Of a stretch of DNA of 64,000 nucleotides, positions 43,985 to 53,913 are shown piece after piece. The translations under genes were made by a program, and so were the position numbers. The notes below the pieces were generated by a model that did not search any database, was not told the origin of the DNA, and saw nothing but the letters and a program-made list of their open reading frames with translations. Where the stretch lies: the sequence record NC_070963.1. One strand, 5' to 3'. How positions within the stretch are numbered: position 1 is the stretch's first letter; each line of letters starts with the position of its first letter.

Positions 43985-45493
43985 GTGGCAAATCAAAATT
44001 TCAAAGTCAAAAACGGACTTGAAGTAGGAACTGGTGTAACTATAAGTGCTGGTATTGTAACTGCTTCTACTTTTAGTGGAAATGCTACCAGTGCAACTTA
44101 CGCTATAACAGCAGGAGTATCAACATATTCTGGAGTATCTGGATTCTCTACGTTCTCTGGATATTCTAATGCTTCTGGAGTATCTACTTTCTCTGGATAC
44201 TCCAATGCTTCTGGAGTCTCAACGTTCTCTGGATATTCTAATGCTTCTGGAGTATCTACTTTCTCTGGATACTCTGATACCACTGGATTCTCTACATTCT
44301 CCGGATATGCAAATGCTTCTGGAGTCTCAACGTTCTCTGGATATTCTGATACTACAGGTTTCTCAACGTTCTCTGGATATTCTAATGCTTCTGGAGTATC
44401 AACTTATTCTGGAGTATCTGGATTCTCTACGTTCTCTGGATACTCTAATACCACTGGATTCTCTACGTTCTCTGGATACTCTGATACTACTGGATTTTCT
44501 ACGTTTTCTGGATACTCTAATCTTTCAGGAATATCGACTTATGCTTCTAATGCTGGAATTGCAACTACAACAACAAATATACCAAACTTAACTGGTGATA
44601 TTACTTCTAACGGAACAGCAACTTCAATTGCTTCTGGAGTTATTGTCGATGATGATATTAATGCTTCTGCCGCTATAGCAGTATCTAAACTAGCAGCATC
44701 AACAATTTCTGGAGTTACTTTAGGAAATAATTTAAGCACTCTTACTTTAAATACATCAGGAACTGGTTTATCAGGTTCCACGACTTATAATGGATCGGGT
44801 TCTGCAACATTTACTGTTGCATCAAACGCTACAAGTTCTAACACTAATTCCACAATTGTTGCAAGGGATGCTTCCGGAAACTTTAGTGCTGGAACTATAA
44901 CTGCAACGACCTTTAGTGGTTCTGGTGCATCTTTAACTTCATTAAATGCTTCTAATCTTTCTTCAGGAACAGTTCCAACAGCAACACTTGCATCCGGAAC
45001 TGCAAACTCGACAACGTATCTAAGAGGAGATCAAACTTGGGCATCCATTAGTGGTGGTGCTACATTATCAAATGACACCACAACAAACGCAACTTACTAT
45101 CCAACATTTAGTTCAACAACTTCGGGGACATATTCAACTGCATATGTTTCAAATACTAAATGCACTTTTAACCCATCAACAGGAACTTTATCAGCAACGG
45201 TATTCACGTCACTTTCTGATAGAACACAAAAAACTGATATAACTCCAATTACAGATGCGATTAAAACTGTAAAACAACTTCAAGGTGTTAAGTATAAGTG
45301 GATAGATAATCATAATAAAGAATCAATCGGTGTGATTGCTCAAGACATTGAAAAGGTATTACCGGAAGTTGTAAATCAAAATCCAGATGGACTTAAGTCA
45401 GTGTCTTATGGAAACATTGTTGGATTATTAATTGAAGCAATTAAAGAACAACAAGTTCGTATTGAAGAATTGGAGAGAAAATTAAATGCCTAA
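43985..45493 (+). CDS. Tail fibre with C-terminal intramolecular chaperone (peptidase S74)
   Basis: SDRTQK...IGVIAQD...YGNIVGLLIEAIKEQQ; GTG start. Confidence 0.88.
   Translation: MANQNFKVKNGLEVGTGVTISAGIVTASTFSGNATSATYAITAGVSTYSGVSGFSTFSGYSNASGVSTFSGYSNASGVSTFSGYSNASGVSTFSGYSDTTGFSTFSGYANASGVSTFSGYSDTTGFSTFSGYSNASGVSTYSGVSGFSTFSGYSNTTGFSTFSGYSDTTGFSTFSGYSNLSGISTYASNAGIATTTTNIPNLTGDITSNGTATSIASGVIVDDDINASAAIAVSKLAASTISGVTLGNNLSTLTLNTSGTGLSGSTTYNGSGSATFTVASNATSSNTNSTIVARDASGNFSAGTITATTFSGSGASLTSLNASNLSSGTVPTATLASGTANSTTYLRGDQTWASISGGATLSNDTTTNATYYPTFSSTTSGTYSTAYVSNTKCTFNPSTGTLSATVFTSLSDRTQKTDITPITDAIKTVKQLQGVKYKWIDNHNKESIGVIAQDIEKVLPEVVNQNPDGLKSVSYGNIVGLLIEAIKEQQVRIEELERKLNA
44085..44565 (+). 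repeat. In-frame 36-nt/12-aa tandem repeats (SGYSNASGVSTF and variants)
   Basis: About a dozen near-identical units. Confidence 0.9.
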
Positions 45494-46520
45494 TCAGTTT
45501 TTATCACCAGAGGGAGATTTAGAAACATTTAATTATTTTGTAACTGAATATTGGTTAATTGACCAGTGGGTTGGTGATACTTTGTGGACTTGGGGTGCTA
45601 ATAGTAGTGGACAACTAGGAAACAATACAACAACTATTAGATCTACTCCAGTCACAACATTCGCTGGTGGAACCAACTGGAAACAAGTTTTTTCTGGACC
45701 TGATCACACAGCAGCAATCAAAACTGATGGAACCTTATGGACTTGGGGTGGTAATTCTTTTGGACAACTAGGAAACAATACGACAACTAATAGTCCTACT
45801 CCAATTACAACATTCTCTGGTGGAACCAACTGGAAACAAGTTTCTTGTGGATTTTATCATACAGCAGCAATCAAAACTGATGGAACCTTATGGACTTGGG
45901 GTTTTAATTCTTATGGACAACTAGGAAACAATACAATAATCAATAGAACCACTCCAGTCACCACATTCGCAGGAGGATTCGACTGGAAACAAGTTTCTTG
46001 TAAAGGTTATACTGTGGCAGCAATTAAAACCGATGGAACCTTATGGACTTGGGGTTGGAATATTTATGGACAAATAGGAGATAATACATCAACCCAAAGA
46101 AATACTCCAGTCACAACACTTGCGGGAGGAACCAACTGGAAACAAGTTTTTTGTGGAGAATTTTATAATCAAGCAATCAAAACTGATGGAACCTTATGGG
46201 GATGGGGTTTTAATGTTTTTGGACAACTAGGAAACAATACAACAACCGATAGATCTACTCCAGTCACGACATTTGCTGGTGGAAACAACTGGAAACAAGT
46301 TTCTGCTGCAGCGTTTCATACAGCAGCAATCAAAACTGATGGAACCCTATGGATTTGGGGTAATAATAATAATGGAAACTTAGGAAACAATACATCAACC
46401 GATAGAATAACTCCAGTCACAACATTTGCAGGAGGAACCAACTGGAAACAAGTTTGTAGCGCCGGTAATAATACAACAGTAGTTACATCAGGAACTGATC
46501 CTACATTCTTCATCTCATAA
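45486..46520 (+). CDS. RCC1/BLIP-II repeat beta-propeller A (6 repeats)
   Basis: 51-aa units LWTWGxNxxGQLG...TNWKQV...[10 protein letters not shown]. Confidence 0.9.
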   Translation: MPNQFLSPEGDLETFNYFVTEYWLIDQWVGDTLWTWGANSSGQLGNNTTTIRSTPVTTFAGGTNWKQVFSGPDHTAAIKTDGTLWTWGGNSFGQLGNNTTTNSPTPITTFSGGTNWKQVSCGFYHTAAIKTDGTLWTWGFNSYGQLGNNTIINRTTPVTTFAGGFDWKQVSCKGYTVAAIKTDGTLWTWGWNIYGQIGDNTSTQRNTPVTTLAGGTNWKQVFCGEFYNQAIKTDGTLWGWGFNVFGQLGNNTTTDRSTPVTTFAGGNNWKQVSAAAFHTAAIKTDGTLWIWGNNNNGNLGNNTSTDRITPVTTFAGGTNWKQVCSAGNNTTVVTSGTDPTFFIS

Positions 46521-46537
46521 ATATTTCAAAAAGTCAT

Positions 46538-47182
46538 ATGTACGCACTTGTTAATGGTCAAGAATTAAGATTAGGACCAATCGCATTCAACTATAGAATG
46601 ATTAATGATGAACTAGAAGAACTTGAAGTTGATTTCAGAGTGACTTCGCAAAGTTATCAATCAGTACCTATTTCAATTACTGAAGACATTAAGATTCTTC
46701 CAGCAAGATATGATAATCCAGAACACGATTCAAAATTTGAATATCTTTCAAATGTCACTCACGAAATTACAGAGACTGAAGTTATTTTTAGACACGATAA
46801 AGTTTCAAAGTCACTTTATCAAATCAAGGACGAATATAAAGCAGGAGTAAAACCAGAGAGACAAAGAAGAGAAAATACTACAATTACCGTAACAATACAA
46901 GATACAGAACTTACTGTATCAACAAGTAGAGAAAGTAGATTAGAATTCATTTCTAAACTATTTGGAAATGATGGACCTTACAACTTTAAGTTTGATAGTG
47001 GTGTTTGGTTAGAAATTACTAAAGTAGATTTAGAATACATAATTTCTCAAATTGATGCAAAAGTTCAGGAAGCATTTGATTGGGAACTTGCAAAACTTGC
47101 AGAGATTGATGCTTGTGTAGATGGTGAAGCAGTTTATGCAGTTGAAATTACTCCACCTCCAGTAGAAAGACCTGTAATTTAA
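46538..47182 (+). CDS. DUF4376-like tail-fibre-assembly protein
   Basis: VKPERQRRE...STSRESR...VQEAFDWE pattern; position among fibre genes. Confidence 0.6.
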
Positions 47183-47183
47183 A

Positions 47184-48401
47184 ATGCCCTATCAACCAAC
47201 TCTTAATTTTAAAACTTCTAGTGGAACTGATTTAGGTAATCTAGGATGGATTACCAAAGAATACTTGATGAGTGTTTATCCACAAATTGCTGGTCAATTA
47301 ATTACTCCGGAATTATGGACTTGGGGTCGTAATTCTTTTGGAGCACTAGGAAACAATACAACCACCAATAGTAACACTCCAATCACTACATTCTCTGGAG
47401 GAGCAAACTGGAAACAAGTTGCTTCTGGAGGTTATTATGTAGCAGCAATCAAAACCGATGGAACCCTATGGACTTGGGGTCGTAATCAATATGCACAACT
47501 AGGAGACAATACAACAACCAATAGATCCACTCCAGTCACAACATTCGCAGGAGGAACTAACTGGAAACAAGTTGCTTGTGGTGCTAATCATACAGTAGCA
47601 ATCAAAACTGATGGAACCTTATGGATTTGGGGTCAAAATACTATTGGACAACTCGGAGACAATACAATAGTCAATAGATCCACTCCAGTCACAACATTCG
47701 CAGGAGGAACCAACTGGAAACAAGTTGCTAGTGGATTACATACAGCAGCAATTAAAACTGATGGTACTTTATGGGTTTGGGGTGACGGTGCTAATGGACA
47801 ATTGGGAAATACTCTTAATAGACCTGTAAGTACTCCAATCACAACATTTGCTGGAGGAACTAATTGGAAACAGATAAGTTGTGGTTATCAACATACAGCA
47901 GCAATCAAGACTGATGGAACTTTATGGACTTGGGGTCAAAATATTTTTAGTTTTTTTCAATTAGGAATCAATGATTCCGTATCTAGAAATACTCCAGTCA
48001 CAACATTTGCGGGAGGAACCAACTGGAAACAAATTGGTTGTGGACGCCAATATACAGCAGCAATCAAGACTGATGGAACCTTATGGACTTGGGGTCAAAA
48101 TAGCAATGGACAACTAGGAGACAATACAACAACTGCAAGATGCACTCCAGTCACAACATTCGCAGGAGGAACCAACTGGAAACAAGTTTCTGGTGGAGGT
48201 TTTCATACAGCAGCAATCAAAACTGATGGAACTTTATGGACTTGGGGTAGTAATGCTTATGGACAATTAGGAAACAATACAACAACCCAAAGAAACGCCC
48301 CAGTCACAACATTTGTAGGAGGAACCAACTGGAAACAAGTTTCTGGTGGAAGTTCTCACACAACAGCAATAAGAACTTCGGACGATTTACAAGGTATCTA
48401 A
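47184..48401 (+). CDS. RCC1/BLIP-II repeat beta-propeller B (7 repeats)
   Basis: Same 51-aa unit. Confidence 0.9.
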
Positions 48402-48437
48402 TATCTGATATAATACTTCTATATCATACTCAAAAAT

Positions 48438-49787
48438 ATGAACCCACTTGAACTCGTTGCAAAGACACTATATTCATTTAAAGAACAGCAATTAACTTTT
48501 GAACTGCTTGATGCTTTTGGAAAACAAGCACAAGTATTTTCACAATATGATGAGATTGCAAAGATTTTTTTTGAACTTCGTAATTTTTCTAAAGCAATTG
48601 AGTATGGTGAAAAGTCTCTTAAATTAGCACAGACAAAAGAAGAAAAATATGTAACAGCAAAGAACCTAATTAATGCTTATAATCAATCAAACTATCCAGA
48701 AAAATCCATAACACAGATTGAAAAACTAAAGAAACAAAATCCTCAAGATACTGAACTTCTTCTAGAAGAAACCTTTGCGTATTCTGCTATTAATCAAAAG
48801 GAAAAGTCGGAGAAACTGCTATTCAATCTTCTTCAACGAAAACTACCAGAAGAGATTGAAAGAAAGGCATATCATAATCTATCAGGTCATTATTTTCGTA
48901 AAGATGACCTTCATACAGGACTTCAACACTTTCTCAAAGCAGGAGAAGTAGAGGCATATAAGAATCAAAAACATCCTGATTTTGAAAAGTGGGATGGAAC
49001 TGTAACTCAAGGAAGAACTATTATTGTAGATAATCAATGTGGTGCTGGTGATGAGGTGATTCACGTTCGGTTTATGAAGAACCTCAAAGACTTGGGAATG
49101 AAACCAATCTGGAGTTCCACTCGTAGAGAACTTGTAGAACTCTTCAAACATAATGGTTATGATGCCGTTTGTATTTGGGACAAACCAGAGTTTCCAAAAG
49201 ATGCCTGTTGGGTTTATGGTCTTGCACTTCCTTATTATCTTAATTTGGAACTCAAAGATATGGGAAGAGAACCTTATCTTTCAACACTTCCAGAGTTTGA
49301 TAAGAAATGGGAATGGATGAAAGAAGATACTGGGTATAAGGTTGGTATGTTCTGGGCGTCTAGTTCTGGATTTGAACAGAACTCTTTCAGGTCAGTAGAA
49401 CTTAAAGATTATATGAGTGTTCTGGGAAACAAAGGATACTCATTGTATTCACTTCAAACTTATACTGACAATAAGGATGCAAATGAGTATCCAGAAATCA
49501 AACAGTCACTGTCAGTCAAGGGTAGAGAGTTTGCTGACACATTCTCTATAATTAAGAACCTTGATTTAGTTGTGACTTCTTGTAGTTTTGTTGCTCACGT
49601 TGCAGCATCTATGGGTAAAGAAGTTTGTGTTTTTGTTCCAATTATGGAATATTATGTTTGGACTTCTTCTACAGGAAAATGTATGTGGTATGGAGATAAC
49701 GTTCATCTCTTCCGTCAAAAGAAACCAAGAACTTGGGATGCACCCATTAAAGAGTTTTGGGAGTTTATGAATGATAGAAGAGTATAA
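48438..49787 (+). CDS. TPR-repeat protein fused to a GT9-like glycosyltransferase domain
   Basis: Helical TPR-like N-terminus; QCGAGDEVIHVRF; DLVVTSCSFVAHVAASMGK. Confidence 0.78.
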   Translation: MNPLELVAKTLYSFKEQQLTFELLDAFGKQAQVFSQYDEIAKIFFELRNFSKAIEYGEKSLKLAQTKEEKYVTAKNLINAYNQSNYPEKSITQIEKLKKQNPQDTELLLEETFAYSAINQKEKSEKLLFNLLQRKLPEEIERKAYHNLSGHYFRKDDLHTGLQHFLKAGEVEAYKNQKHPDFEKWDGTVTQGRTIIVDNQCGAGDEVIHVRFMKNLKDLGMKPIWSSTRRELVELFKHNGYDAVCIWDKPEFPKDACWVYGLALPYYLNLELKDMGREPYLSTLPEFDKKWEWMKEDTGYKVGMFWASSSGFEQNSFRSVELKDYMSVLGNKGYSLYSLQTYTDNKDANEYPEIKQSLSVKGREFADTFSIIKNLDLVVTSCSFVAHVAASMGKEVCVFVPIMEYYVWTSSTGKCMWYGDNVHLFRQKKPRTWDAPIKEFWEFMNDRRV

Positions 49788-50229
49788 TTTATCCTTCCTC
49801 AACCTCAATTCCATCAAGAACAAACTTTTACAAATACAGACCGCTTCTCACGGTCTTGTGACAAAAGGTGTTTCTACTTATAATCACGGAATGCCTGTTC
49901 TAATGTATCCAGAACTGATAGGATTAAAAACGATTATCAAAGAATATATTATAATCTATTGTGAGAAGTATAATATTCCACCACTGGAGTTTATCAATAG
50001 TTGGTTTAATATTTCACAATCAGGAAATAAACTCAAAGCACATAAGCACGAAGAGAGTATTGTTAGTGGAGCATTTTATATTTCTGGAAGAACACCTTTG
50101 ATTTTTCCAGATGTATCAATTCAACCTTATCCGGGTTTATTAGTTATTTTCTCAAGCGATTTGGTTCATTATACAGAAGAAGAAACAGAAGAAAGAATTG
50201 TGATTAGTTTTAATACAGATTACCTATGA
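49771..50229 (+). CDS. 2OG-Fe(II) oxygenase-like protein
   Basis: WFN...HKH...SGAFY...LVIFSSDLVH...RIVISFN. Confidence 0.75.
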   Translation: MIEEYNLSFLNLNSIKNKLLQIQTASHGLVTKGVSTYNHGMPVLMYPELIGLKTIIKEYIIIYCEKYNIPPLEFINSWFNISQSGNKLKAHKHEESIVSGAFYISGRTPLIFPDVSIQPYPGLLVIFSSDLVHYTEEETEERIVISFNTDYL

Positions 50230-50909
50230 GATTTCATACCTTTTATACGAAAAACCTTCCAGAACAATTAATTACAGACCACAAAAGAGTTTGTGATTGT
50301 ATTGGCATTGATGTGACTTATCATATTCAAGATGCAATAGATGATTATGATACTCTTTATACTGCTCACGGAAAGTTTATGACTTCTGTGATGGAGCAAG
50401 AAGAAGTTGCTTGCTTCTTAGATATTGATTGTCTCCCACATAGTAAAGAACTCCTAGAAAAAGCATACAACTGGGCAGTAGAAAATAAATCTTTTGTTGG
50501 CAATGCTCAAAACATTTCTCATACGCAAATGAGAAATCATATCTATGCTGCTGCTTCTTGTTTGATTATCACTAAAGATGCTTGGAATAATTTGGGAAAT
50601 CCAGATTTTACTTGGTTTATGCAAAATGAAATTCAAATAGATACAGCACAAATTCTAACTTTAAGAGCAGACCAGATTGGAATGCCTTATCAATTAATGT
50701 ATCCAGTTGGTTATGATGGTCCAGAAGAATACAAACTTTCTGGATATGGAATGTATGGAACAGGAACTTTATATCCAGCAACTTGGCATTATTTTAGAAT
50801 CAGTAAGTTCAAAAATCAAATACCAGACCTTTGGACAACACGAGTAAATAATATATTAGAAAATCAAAAAATCATTTCAAATCATTCTTCGTGTTTTTAT
50901 GAATTATAA
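50226..50909 (+). CDS. GT-A-like hypothetical protein
   Basis: FLDIDCLP DxD motif. Confidence 0.55.
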   Translation: MRFHTFYTKNLPEQLITDHKRVCDCIGIDVTYHIQDAIDDYDTLYTAHGKFMTSVMEQEEVACFLDIDCLPHSKELLEKAYNWAVENKSFVGNAQNISHTQMRNHIYAAASCLIITKDAWNNLGNPDFTWFMQNEIQIDTAQILTLRADQIGMPYQLMYPVGYDGPEEYKLSGYGMYGTGTLYPATWHYFRISKFKNQIPDLWTTRVNNILENQKIISNHSSCFYEL

Positions 50910-51666
50910 ATTTTTGTTTTTAGTTGGGTCTGCAATTAATCATTTTAAAGAAGAAGACTTGAGTGCTTTTAAGGCAGAAGAGAGATTCCAACAAACACTG
51001 GATACAATTAAATCAATTAAAGATAAAGTTCCTGATGCTTATGTTTTAATCTATGAAGGGTCTGAAACTTCTATCAAACAAGAATACAAAGATAAGTTTA
51101 TAGAACAATCTGATTTATTTCTTGAGTTTGGAAATGACCCCTATATGAAATCTTTGTATGAAAATCTTCATAGAGACCCAGATAAATTTACATTTGTGAA
51201 ATCTATGTTGGAATGTAGATGTTTGCAATTAGTTCTAAATCATATGATGGAGCATAATATCTTTAATGATGCAATAAGAGTATTCAAATTAAGTGGTAGA
51301 TATAAACTGAATGAATACTTTGATATTAATGATTACAAAACTAGGTTCTTGATGAATAAGTATGTAATGAAATATTATGACTATGAAGAAAGATTTGAAG
51401 ATATTGAAAACATCTATGCAACTCTTTATGGATGTAAAGGAAGTATTGTGACTGGTTTGTGGTCATTTGATAGGTTTTTGTTCAATGATATTTTCAATGT
51501 TCTTCAAAGAAGTTTTGAATATATGGAAAGAGCAATTCAATTAACTGCTGGAATTGATATTGAACACTCTTTTTATCATTTTATAGACAGAGATAAGATT
51601 TTAAATGTTCCAGTTCTTGGATTTGATTTAATTAAAGGTATGAATGGAGATAGATATTCATTATGA
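50899..51666 (+). CDS. Hypothetical protein (glycan-island type)
   Basis: ERFQQTLDTIKSI and FKLSGRY motifs; coupled in the operon. Confidence 0.55.
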   Translation: MNYKFLFLVGSAINHFKEEDLSAFKAEERFQQTLDTIKSIKDKVPDAYVLIYEGSETSIKQEYKDKFIEQSDLFLEFGNDPYMKSLYENLHRDPDKFTFVKSMLECRCLQLVLNHMMEHNIFNDAIRVFKLSGRYKLNEYFDINDYKTRFLMNKYVMKYYDYEERFEDIENIYATLYGCKGSIVTGLWSFDRFLFNDIFNVLQRSFEYMERAIQLTAGIDIEHSFYHFIDRDKILNVPVLGFDLIKGMNGDRYSL

Positions 51667-52367
51667 AAATTGCAATCTTTTATCATACCTTTCAGTCAGG
51701 TATGGGTGCTTTTGTCTATCAATCTCAAATTCATAGGTTGTATTGTTCTGGATTAATTGATGCTGCTGATTACATTCATATTGGTGTGAATGGTGATCAA
51801 GAGATGTTTAATGTTCCAGAAAAAGCAAAAGTATCTTACAATACTAACTGGAAAGAAGAAACAGAAACTCTCATAGCACTCAAAAACTTTGCCTATGAAA
51901 ATCCAGATTATAAGATTTTGTATTTTCATATGAAAGGTGCAAGCAAAGAAACTCTTGTTGCAAACTCTTGGAGATTGATGATGGAATATTTTGTGATTGA
52001 CCGGTGGAAAGAGTGTGTAGAACATTTGAATGATTATGACTGCGTAGGGCAGACCTATAAACCTCTTGGACCAACTTTATGGGGTGATGGGACTATGACC
52101 AGTAACGAAGGTATTGGATGCTATTGTGGGAACTTCTGGTGGGCAAATGCGTCTTATATTCAAACACTAGACCATAACTATTTGAATACTAATTATCGTT
52201 TTGATAGAGAGTTCTGGATTGGAACCAATAAGAATGTAAAGGCAAAGTCATTTATGGAATATGCTGATAGTGATTACATTGCCGATAATCATCCCATCCC
52301 ATTAAAGAAAGGTATGAGTGACTATGAACCTTATACACATTACTTCCGTGAGGTAGAATACTTATGA
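51663..52367 (+). CDS. Hypothetical protein, possibly glycosyltransferase-like
   Basis: ILYFHMKG, GNFWWANASYI, REFWIG. Confidence 0.55.
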   Translation: MKIAIFYHTFQSGMGAFVYQSQIHRLYCSGLIDAADYIHIGVNGDQEMFNVPEKAKVSYNTNWKEETETLIALKNFAYENPDYKILYFHMKGASKETLVANSWRLMMEYFVIDRWKECVEHLNDYDCVGQTYKPLGPTLWGDGTMTSNEGIGCYCGNFWWANASYIQTLDHNYLNTNYRFDREFWIGTNKNVKAKSFMEYADSDYIADNHPIPLKKGMSDYEPYTHYFREVEYL

Positions 52368-52732
52368 GAGAGTGTAGAGAATGTACTGCTTGCTGTACTT
52401 GGTTACAAGGGTCTGCTTATGGATATGAGTTTGGTGGTGGAAAGTCTTGTAAGTTCTTATGTGAGAATGGGTGTAGTGTTCATAAGGTACGACCAAAAGT
52501 ATGTGAAGGATATTTCTGTGCTTGGGCACAAGAACTTTTAGCGGAAGAAATGAGACCTGATAAGTGTGGTGTTCTTGCTTCTGTGGAAAATAATGAAAGA
52601 GGACAATATATTAAATTAGTTTCAATTCAAGAAGAAATAAATACAGATATATTAGAATATTTTAAAAATTGGAGTAGAATGATGAATACTCCTGTGATTT
52701 ATTCAAACAATAATTCTTGGGAAGTTCTCTAA
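52364..52732 (+). CDS. Cys-cluster (YkgJ/CxxCxxCC-like) protein
   Basis: CRECTACC...CKFL...CSVH..RP..CEGYFC. Confidence 0.7.
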   Translation: MRECRECTACCTWLQGSAYGYEFGGGKSCKFLCENGCSVHKVRPKVCEGYFCAWAQELLAEEMRPDKCGVLASVENNERGQYIKLVSIQEEINTDILEYFKNWSRMMNTPVIYSNNNSWEVL

Positions 52733-53913
52733 TGCCTACTTTTTACAATTACACCGAGAATGGAGTAGTATATTCTTTTGATGATGTCTTTGTGCCTGCA
52801 GATGCTTTTAGGCAGGGAAACTTATGGGTTTGGGGTCGCAATAATTTTGGACAACTGGGAGACAATACAACAACCAATAGATCCACTCCAGTCACAACAC
52901 TTGCTGGTGGGGCAAACTGGAAACAAGTTGCTTGTGGAGGTAGTCATACTGCAGCAATTAAGACTGATGGAACCATATGGACTTGGGGTCTTAATAGTCA
53001 GGGACAACTAGGAGACAATACAACAACCTGGAGATCAACTCCAGTCACTACATTTGCCGGAGGAACCAACTGGAAACAAGTTGCTTGTGGAAATAATTAT
53101 ACCGCAGCAATCAAAACTGATGGAACCTTATGGACTTGGGGTGTTAATTTTAATGGACAACTAGGAGACAATACAGCAACCCTAAGAAACATTCCAGTCA
53201 CTACATTCGCAGGAGGAACCAACTGGAAACAAGTTGCTTGTGGGCAATTTCAAACATCAGCAATCAAAACTGATGGAACCTTATGGACTTGGGGTCGTAA
53301 TAATTATGGACAACTAGGAGACAATACATCAGGAACCGATAAATTCACTCCAGTCACAACATTCGCCGGAGGAACCAATTGGAAACAACTTGCTAGTGGA
53401 AGTGTTCATATAGCAGCAATTAAAACAGATGGAACCTTATGGATTTGGGGTCGTAATAATTTTGGGCAACTAGGAGACAATACAAAAACAGATAGATCCA
53501 CTCCAGTCACTACATTTGCAGGAGAAGCAAACTGGAAACAAGTTGCTTGTGGAGGTCTTCATACAGCAGCAATCAAAACAGATGGAACTTTATGGGATTG
53601 GGGTTATAATAATCCTGGACAACTAGGAGATAATACAACAACTAGTAGATGCACTCCAGTCACAACATTCGCCGGAGGAACCAACTGGAAACAAGTTGCT
53701 AATGGTAATGGAGTTGGTTTTAACGCAGCAATCAAAACAGATGGAACCTTATGGATTTGGGGTAGTAATGCTTATGGACAAATAGGAGACAACACTTCGG
53801 GGAGCAATAGACTTACACCAGTCACTACATTCGCAGGAGGAACTAATTGGAAACAAGTTGCTGGTGGATATGATCATACACTAGCATTCACATACATAGA
53901 CGATTATCAGTAA
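52732..53913 (+). CDS. RCC1/BLIP-II repeat beta-propeller C (7 repeats)
   Basis: Same 51-aa unit; ATG at 52732 from a TAATG overlap. Confidence 0.9.
   Translation: MPTFYNYTENGVVYSFDDVFVPADAFRQGNLWVWGRNNFGQLGDNTTTNRSTPVTTLAGGANWKQVACGGSHTAAIKTDGTIWTWGLNSQGQLGDNTTTWRSTPVTTFAGGTNWKQVACGNNYTAAIKTDGTLWTWGVNFNGQLGDNTATLRNIPVTTFAGGTNWKQVACGQFQTSAIKTDGTLWTWGRNNYGQLGDNTSGTDKFTPVTTFAGGTNWKQLASGSVHIAAIKTDGTLWIWGRNNFGQLGDNTKTDRSTPVTTFAGEANWKQVACGGLHTAAIKTDGTLWDWGYNNPGQLGDNTTTSRCTPVTTFAGGTNWKQVANGNGVGFNAAIKTDGTLWIWGSNAYGQIGDNTSGSNRLTPVTTFAGGTNWKQVAGGYDHTLAFTYIDDYQ

Follow-up and report, generated by a model that had tools for sequence, protein, structure and literature searches.

T-ending codons in the variable loops of RCC1-like propellers of Synechococcus phage S-SRM01: most probably ancestry, residue preference, codon usage and selection without templated mutagenesis

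The variable regions of DGRs, for example that of mtd in Bordetella phage BPP-1, each comprise one C-terminal region of C-type-lectin or Ig fold, and Avd is common in these systems, though not universal. TAL effector repeats and variable LRR or ankyrin arrays are concertedly evolving repeats with few specificity residues. In antibody CDRs, codon bias steers the mutator AID to hotspots, and a serine AGY codon bias was reportedly described in these regions by Wagner, Milstein and Neuberger in 1995.

Three RCC1 beta-propeller genes of Synechococcus phage S-SRM01 (6, 7 and 7 blades, 20 in all, of approximately 51 codons each) adjoin a tail-fibre gene in the terminal 64 kb of the complete phage genome of 240,842 bp; this stretch of 64,000 nucleotides is the whole of the DNA under study and is termed the window. 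Like mtd of BPP-1, they are phage genes of a tail-fibre region in which a conserved scaffold holds a few codons varying at positions 1 and 2, with position 3 mostly a pyrimidine and Asn codons prominent; unlike DGR targets, they have their variable sites distributed among 20 repeat units of three genes. With TAL effector, LRR and ankyrin arrays they share near-identical repeat frameworks and diversity at fixed positions, while fold and biology are different. Seven blades and the same repeat motif are found in RCC1-like domain propellers (UVR8, HERC2 RLD, RCC1 and BLIP-II), from which the phage proteins differ in being bare, with only ~30-45 extra N-terminal residues, in occurring as two to three paralogues per phage within a tail-fibre module, and in having blades unusually alike in DNA (73-87% identity). 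The features concerned are as follows (window positions).

43985 to 45493, plus strand: tail-fibre gene gp334, directly upstream of propeller gene 1, with a C-terminal Peptidase_S74 chaperone domain (PF13884, 6.2e-16)
45486 to 46520, plus strand: RCC1 propeller gene 1 (gp335, 344 aa; Pfam RCC1 4.7e-64, WD40_RLD 9.3e-67)
45573, 45726, 45879, 46032, 46185 and 46338, plus strand: starts of the six recognisable blades of gene 1
46362 to 46373, plus strand: AAT AAT AAT AAT run (G-N-N-N-N-G) in the last blade of gene 1, read directly
46538 to 47182, plus strand: DUF4376 protein gene gp336, between propeller genes 1 and 2 (PF14301, 1.6e-5)
47184 to 48401, plus strand: RCC1 propeller gene 2 (gp337, 405 aa; Pfam RCC1 2.1e-77, WD40_RLD 8.8e-90)
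47304, 47457, 47610, 47760, 47913, 48072 and 48225, plus strand: starts of the seven blades of gene 2
52717 to 53913, plus strand: RCC1 propeller gene 3 (gp344; Pfam RCC1 1.6e-74, WD40_RLD 8.1e-96; the RefSeq start is the ATG at 52732)
52813, 52966, 53119, 53272, 53428, 53581 and 53740, plus strand: starts of the seven blades of gene 3

The ATG of gene 1, which is annotated in RefSeq as 'regulator of chromosome condensation', overlaps the stop codon of the tail-fibre gene. The product of the latter also matches PHROG tail-fibre families, and its position next door places the RCC1 genes in a tail-fibre module. Among 69 related loci, linkage of the RCC1 genes with tail-fibre, DUF4376, TPR and Cys-rich genes is conserved: a gp334 homologue lies within 6 kb of an RCC1 gene in 39, and a DUF4376 gene of the gp336 type, itself with a weak match to a PHROG tail-fibre family, is present in 54 as a conserved partner. 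S-SRM01 is a freshwater cyanomyovirus, and a widespread family of such phages has two to three RCC1 propellers in the tail-fibre module, sometimes fused and with up to 27 blades. The RCC1 genes are not mentioned in the S-SRM01 genome paper (PMC8557907), and literature searches on phage or cyanophage RCC1 and hypervariability returned only strain numbers of culture collections or unrelated work.

Each of the three genes encodes a stand-alone RCC1-like beta-propeller of seven blades. The Pfam RCC1 profile (PF00415) matched six to seven repeats per protein above its curated cut-off (E 4.7e-64 to 1.6e-74), and WD40_RLD (PF25390) matched all three with 226-322 bits against a cut-off of 150. The AlphaFold model of the gene 3 product (pLDDT 87.9, pTM 0.86) is a seven-bladed propeller with four strands per blade, and Foldseek analysis of this model against the PDB gave UVR8, HERC2, RPGR and RCC1 as top matches (E ~1e-33), those to UVR8 and the HERC2 RLD being the best (TM 0.81-0.84, 25-30% identity). 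Approximately six to seven codons per blade vary freely, namely the x positions of G-x-N-x-x-G, the two codons before T-P-V and two to three in the K-Q-V...H-T hairpin, while the blade strands are conserved, as are two of the four types of loop. Judged by blade topology, the variable codons are located in two loop types facing the same side of the propeller. That side is the likely ligand-binding face, and the proteins are plausible host-recognition or glycan-binding proteins, for which variation of the host surface may be the selective agent.

An earlier, sequence-only reading had drawn attention to the third bases of these loop codons, and its observations were reproduced. At the x positions (alignment columns 8, 12 and 13) 51 of 60 codons end in T and 54 in T or C, exactly as counted by hand, against 34.5 and 42.6 expected if the amino acids found there were encoded with the codon usage of 47 other ORFs of the window. 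Background usage alone therefore falls short (naive P of 2e-8 for T and 1e-7 for T/C). The 25 codons at the x positions that encode G, A, T, P, V, S, R or L all have T or C as third base, where 13.9 would be expected, and the loop after K-Q-V shares the bias, with T at 15/19 codons in column 45 and 17/20 in column 48. Framework codons, as had also been remarked, favour A and are poor in T (189 ending in T versus 336 expected). The naive P values are too strong because all 20 blades were copied from one unit; a test by column, which allows for this non-independence, found a pyrimidine majority in 11 of 12 variable columns and in 15 of the 36 columns of the framework (Fisher P = 0.003), so the contrast is real but far weaker than the codon count implies. 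Next-base context was considered as a cause and set aside, since the background share of T at four-fold sites is only 0.36-0.51 by next base, which is too little. The excess of T-ending codons in the variable loops is genuine.

Such a pattern could arise if a DGR, carried by the phage or, acting in trans, by its host Synechococcus sp. KCZYC6, rewrote the loop codons from an AAT-rich template, in which case only adenines would change and position 3 would stay T. The sequence-only reading had proposed AAT-templated, DGR-like or other site-directed mutagenesis, and the NNT count, the four consecutive AAT codons in one blade and a ~4-5-fold depletion of Lys and Glu at hypervariable columns, with no such depletion of Asp and Arg, agree with a DGR. 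The parts of one were sought in the complete phage genome. No match to a reverse transcriptase (PF00078, RVT_1) was obtained at E<=10 nor to Avd (PF05635) at E<=1, which extends to all 240,842 bp the absence of a reverse transcriptase already noted for the window, and no reverse transcriptase passed the family cut-off in a set of 50 related viral contigs that includes three with 99-100% completeness. The sole weak match, of 14.7 bits in a related contig, proved to be to an SMC/Rad50-type ATPase and was discarded. A DNA search of the genome with one blade returned only the 20 coding blades (73-87% identity), all else having E>0.3, and the RCC1 HMM likewise found 20 repeats, all inside the three genes, with no 21st copy; a template repeat, AAT-rich or other, was thus not found in this genome. 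When each blade was tried as the template, 20-42% of mismatches fell at its adenines, in line with an A content of 32-40%, and the best single pair of blades reached 50%. The blade with the AAT run was rejected as a template, as 42% of mismatches lay at adenines where adenine makes up 40% of its bases.

Framework adenines are conserved, as the sequence-only reading had itself pointed out against a DGR, with 28 of 55 majority-A columns being at least 95% A across blades, and synonymous changes other than at A occur, framework synonymous differences being common between blades (nucleotide diversity of 0.24 at framework four-fold sites). Nor do the loops keep to NNT: in the window, 34 of the 139 hypervariable codons (24%) depart from it, including CAA nine times and TGG twice, as do 26-42% of codons at the six columns that are hypervariable across the family. 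High-GC bacterial homologues carry NNC at the same columns. The DGR reading is contradicted on every defining feature that could be tested and is extremely improbable.

The third base at hypervariable columns behaves much as it does elsewhere. Hypervariable columns retain their majority third base in 78% of blades and framework four-fold sites in 88%, the corresponding values for the purine/pyrimidine class being 86% and 92%; between blades, nucleotide diversity at hypervariable codons is 0.35 at position 3 and 0.68 and 0.67 at positions 1 and 2. Three pairs of orthologs from related viral contigs were compared: they differed at 1.3, 2.4 and 13.6% of sites at hypervariable position 3 and at 1.0, 2.9 and 14.3%, respectively, at the other third positions of the blades, while hypervariable positions 1 and 2 changed 2.5-4 times faster. 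A third base that changes at the ordinary rate is an ordinary inherited site, which is not protected as the templated model would have it.

These rates also bear on a second possibility, that some other, RT-free local hypermutation raises the mutation rate of the loop codons and selection sorts the products. In its favour, divergence in close pairs is 2.5-6 times higher at positions 1 and 2 than at synonymous sites, and most of the loop codons altered in the closest ortholog pair differ at two to three bases together. Such a process should, however, raise third-position change as well, and in all three pairs hypervariable position 3 equals the other third positions. The multi-base codon changes lie in tracts that contain synonymous changes too and match a neighbouring blade, which identifies them as gene conversion. 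In blade 6 of the relative L064, columns 9-30 are separated from blade 5 of the same gene by only 2 differences in 66 bases but from the orthologous blade in L002 by many, and four of the six synonymous differences of the L064 gene lie inside this tract. Conversion between neighbouring blades, a likeness to TAL effector, LRR and ankyrin arrays, is therefore one demonstrated source of change in this relative. Among the 20 blades of S-SRM01 itself no conversion tract was detected, in which it differs from these arrays (permutation test; 2 of 190 pairs with P<=0.01, as by chance). Among loci taken from differently numbered metagenome records of IMG/VR, many pairs show 100% identity over as much as 13 kb, every loop codon included; leaving aside overlapping loci of one record, these amount to roughly a dozen independent pairs or groups. 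One of eight SNPs in near-identical pairs falls in a hypervariable codon, and both results concern consensus assemblies. Independent assemblies identical through the loops speak against local hypermutation, which is considered very improbable; at this consensus level there is no excess variation of the kind that a DGR would produce.

The NNT bias is, with high probability, the combined result of the common ancestry of the repeats, loop residue preference, AT-rich codon usage and diversifying selection, without templated mutagenesis. The 20 blades descend from one 153-bp unit, and their variable loop positions favour Tyr, Asn, Ser, Phe, Asp and Gly, as they do throughout the RCC1 family. Because most of these residues can be written only as NNY, the ancestral blade was very probably NNY at every variable column, which in an AT-rich phage would mean NNT. 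The blades are young on the synonymous clock, so the third base would be largely inherited, whereas amino-acid-changing substitutions at positions 1 and 2 were fixed ~2.5-6 times faster, which points to diversifying selection. Gene conversion may in addition copy whole loop cassettes between blades, moving NNT codons as units. As in antibody CDRs, codon choice differs between the variable loops and the framework of one gene; unlike in CDRs, the bias of S-SRM01 would follow from residue preference and ancestry, and no mutator is present or, whether templated or site-directed, needed. 'Selection plus codon bias', the other option left by the sequence-only reading, was thus essentially correct but needs the common ancestry of the blades to be added. 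A false lead is thereby removed: an NNT signature at the variable codons of a repeat protein can mimic DGR output if the repeats descend from a recent common ancestor and have loops that favour NNY-only residues. In scans for such systems, the third base of variable codons should be compared with framework synonymous sites, and homologues from genomes of different GC content checked, before a mutator is invoked. The biology that remains, cyanomyovirus RCC1 loops under diversifying selection with gene conversion from blade to blade, is of moderate interest.

Both the phage family and bacterial homologues favour NNY codons at these columns. Across 991 blades of 126 related phage genes, Tyr (17%), Asn (15%) and Ser (14.5%) are prominent at the hypervariable columns, and 72-87% of codons there are NNY. 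From frequencies of 0.71-0.87, the chance that an ancestral blade was NNY at all seven hypervariable columns is ~0.16, which is unremarkable. In 978 blades of 101 bacterial RCC1 genes from many phyla, the most variable columns are the same as in the phages and NNY accounts for 64-86% of codons, the third base being T where the genome is low in GC and C where it is high.

A modest, family-wide excess of T is only partly accounted for by these preferences. Given the amino acid, the T-ending share at hypervariable columns of the family is 0.58-0.74 versus 0.48-0.59 expected; in four-fold boxes T reaches 0.54-0.62 (Pro 0.40) against a background of 0.27-0.48, and the four-fold T share is higher at hypervariable than at framework codons in 86 of 115 genes. 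In bacteria, low-GC and high-GC alike, a similar but smaller excess is seen (Y 0.61 versus 0.52 and 0.71 versus 0.57). Second-order selection at the codon level, holding loop codons as NNY in addition to ancestry and residue preference, would fit these figures, as NNY cannot mutate to a stop at positions 1 and 2 and reaches 15 amino acids. The excess is small, though, and second-order selection of this kind is generally weak, so that such a contribution is unlikely. That the pyrimidine excess of phage and bacterial RCC1 loops is a general codon-level adaptation, avoiding stops and giving the widest useful set of residues, is quite unlikely; if true, NNY loop codons would be a non-enzymatic counterpart to the AAY rule of DGR templates. 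The residual excess is instead tentatively attributed to incomplete equilibration. Framework columns, to which no such rationale applies, show column-specific codon departures that are equally large; in one of them GTC reaches 36%, where the background is ~10%.

The window was found to be 100% identical to the final 64 kb of the record of Synechococcus phage S-SRM01 (NC_070963.1), a member of the Kyanoviridae from a Singapore reservoir with a genome of 240,842 bp (record position minus 176,842 gives the window position). Three of its genes, gp335, gp337 and gp344, encode RCC1 proteins of six, seven and seven blades, respectively (20 blades, ~51 residues each), with pairwise DNA identity among the blades of 73-87%. 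A scan of IMG/VR identified 69 related loci whose genes share 54-77% identity with gp344, giving 126 unique genes and 991 blades, those of the window excluded.

Features of the RCC1 region (fractions: related loci with a homologue within 6 kb of an RCC1 gene)
43985-45493, + strand: tail fibre gp334, C-terminal end a Peptidase_S74 intramolecular chaperone domain; 39/69
45486-46520: gp335, Pfam RCC1 and RCC1-like-domain models
46538-47182, + strand: DUF4376 protein; 54/69
47184-48401: gp337, same models
48438-49787, + strand: TPR protein; 58/69
52364-52732, + strand: small Cys-rich protein; 44/69
52717/52732-53913: gp344, same models

E values of the three RCC1 genes against these models range from 1e-64 to 1e-96. 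The start of gp335 sits within the stop region of gp334, the DUF4376 protein lies between gp335 and gp337, and a glycan-enzyme island separates gp337 from gp344. The recurrence of the DUF4376, TPR and Cys-rich proteins beside RCC1 genes suggests a conserved module. The longest ORF of gp344 begins with TTG at 52717, overlapping the upstream gene, while the RefSeq start is the ATG at 52732; this choice leaves the repeats unaffected. Roughly twelve nearly perfect copies of a 12-residue repeat (S-T-F-S-G-Y-S-N/D-A/T-S/T-G-V/F) make up the N-terminal half of gp334.

When the 20 blades were aligned by codon, variability was greatest at the three x positions of G-x-N-x-x-G, at two positions directly preceding T-P-V and at two in the hairpin following K-Q-V. 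The count made in the sequence-only reading at the three x positions was reproduced, with 51 of 60 codons ending in T (34.5 expected) and 54 in T or C (42.6 expected); among multi-box amino acids, all 25 codons end in T or C (13.9 expected). Expectations combined the amino acids present at these positions with codon frequencies from 47 other ORFs in the window (third base T 0.48, A 0.30, C 0.11, G 0.11), and codon usage alone is therefore insufficient to explain the count. Framework codons favour A, as had been noted, and are poor in T (189 T-ending, 336 expected), and the run of four AAT codons is located at 46362-46373. As the 20 blades are not independent, columns were also taken as the unit: pyrimidine is the majority in 11/12 variable and 15/36 framework columns (P = 0.003).

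This pattern had been likened to AAT-templated mutagenesis by a diversity-generating retroelement, a reading that the tests do not support. Neither a reverse transcriptase (even at E = 10) nor Avd was detected in the complete S-SRM01 genome, extending the absence of the former beyond the window, and blade copies there are limited to the 20 coding ones, leaving no template repeat. Among 50 related viral contigs, of which three are 99-100% complete, no reverse transcriptase exceeded the threshold; their sole weak match is an SMC/Rad50-type ATPase. When each blade was treated as a putative template, 20-42% of mismatches fell at its own adenines, as many as its share of adenine (32-40%) predicts; the blade with the AAT run was rejected as a template on the same grounds (42% of mismatches, 40% adenine). 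Adenine mutagenesis of a blade-length cDNA would be expected to scramble the framework too, whereas its adenines are conserved as first described, 28 of 55 majority-A columns being A in 95% or more of the blades. Furthermore, of the 139 hypervariable codons of S-SRM01, 34 depart from NNT and 19 from NNY, the exceptions to NNT including CAA (nine times) and TGG (twice).

Across the phage family, hypervariable columns are rich in Tyr (17%), Asn (15%), Ser (14.5%), Phe (5%) and Asp (5%), and NNY makes up 72-87% of their codons. The probability of an ancestral blade being NNY at all seven columns is ~0.16, from seven measured column frequencies of 0.71-0.87. The same propeller turned up in many phyla when 185,579 species genomes were scanned. 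In 101 bacterial RCC1 genes (978 blades) variability is greatest at the same columns, with the same residues and with NNY in 64-86%, codons ending in T where genome GC is low and in C where it is high. The pyrimidine ending thus stems from the composition of RCC1 loops, and the T simply mirrors the AT-richness of the phage. At least 596 bacterial genome stretches from many phyla (including Chryseobacterium, Flavobacterium, Acidimicrobiia, Nitrospirota and Saccharibacteria) contain the blade motif K-T-D-G-T-L-W-x-W, with 42-51% identity to the phage protein; no cyanobacteria are among the best 80 of these.

A residual T excess was observed in the phage family: with amino-acid identity taken into account, the share of codons ending in T at the hypervariable columns is 0.58-0.74 (0.48-0.59 expected), and that of T in four-fold boxes there is 0.54-0.62 (Pro 0.40) against a background of 0.27-0.48. 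Neighbouring-base context accounts for little of this excess. Bacterial RCC1 genes show a smaller excess of the same kind. Framework columns depart from expectation by equally large, column-specific amounts (one Val column is 36% GTC, background ~10%), and the residual is therefore taken to reflect ancestral NNY codons that have not fully equilibrated, with weak codon-level selection favouring NNY as an unlikely further contributor.

In S-SRM01, the majority third base is kept in 88% of blades at framework four-fold sites (purine/pyrimidine class 92%, nucleotide diversity 0.24) and in 78% at hypervariable position 3 (86%, 0.35), the T of loop codons therefore being slightly less conserved than synonymous framework bases; diversity at hypervariable positions 1 and 2 is 0.68 and 0.67. 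The third base behaves as an ordinary inherited site, and the only unusual feature of these codons is rapid change at positions 1-2.

Differences (%) between related viral contigs, as pairwise counts from aligned contig pairs rather than a fitted codon model (hypervariable position 3; other blade position 3; hypervariable positions 1/2; flanking DNA)
L010/L050: 1.3; 1.0; 3.7/2.5; 1.8
L002/L064: 2.4; 2.9; 11.9/7.1; 8.7
L032/L034: 13.6; 14.3; 39.2/35.2; 2.7

Third positions of loop codons show neither protection nor hypermutation. Positions 1-2 change ~2.5-4 times faster, and up to ~6 times relative to four-fold sites, an acceleration typical of diversifying selection on binding loops and far below retroelement-type turnover. 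The earlier alternative, selection plus codon bias, largely holds when the shared descent of the blades is added to it.

Complete identity over as much as 13 kb, all loop codons included, links many pairs of loci whose metagenome records carry different numbers; these represent about a dozen independent pairs or groups once overlapping loci of one record are excluded. Eight SNPs in near-identical pairs comprise one in a hypervariable codon, two at framework third positions and five outside blades. In the closest ortholog pair, L002/L064, changed loop codons mostly differ at two or three bases simultaneously and cluster in two blades. In L064 blade 6, the altered stretch (columns 9-30, 66 bases) is only two bases away from blade 5 of the same gene and accounts for four of the six synonymous differences in that gene. 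This is a case of gene conversion between neighbouring blades, one source of new loop sequences. No significant conversion tracts were detected among the 20 blades of S-SRM01 (permutation test), so conversion is documented for the family rather than for S-SRM01 itself. L032 and L034 have flanks 2.7% apart; every codon position of their RCC1 blades diverges by 10-14%, and positions 1-2 of the loop codons by 35-39%. The RCC1 genes thus resemble a cassette that was exchanged or converted within an otherwise conserved neighbourhood.

AlphaFold, given 33 family members as input, models gp344 as a seven-bladed propeller (pLDDT 87.9, pTM 0.86), with UVR8 and the RCC1-like domains of HERC2 as top PDB matches (TM 0.81-0.84). 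By topology, from strand order in this model, the loop following the L-W-x-W-G strand and the hairpin joining the K-Q-V and H-T-A-A strands would share one blade face, with the conserved A-G-G-T-N-W and T-D-G-T turns on the opposite one; the propellers would thus display ~45 variable residues on a single face. This variable face, together with linkage to the TPR, DUF4376, Cys-rich and tail-fibre genes, suggests a role in recognising host surfaces or glycans in the course of an arms race. Related viral RCC1 genes encode seven blades in 145 of 177 ORFs, with 11, 14, 19, 21, 24 and 27 also occurring (loci L012, L037, L044, L055 and L065 are examples with 11-27); these longer proteins are presumably two to four propellers fused.
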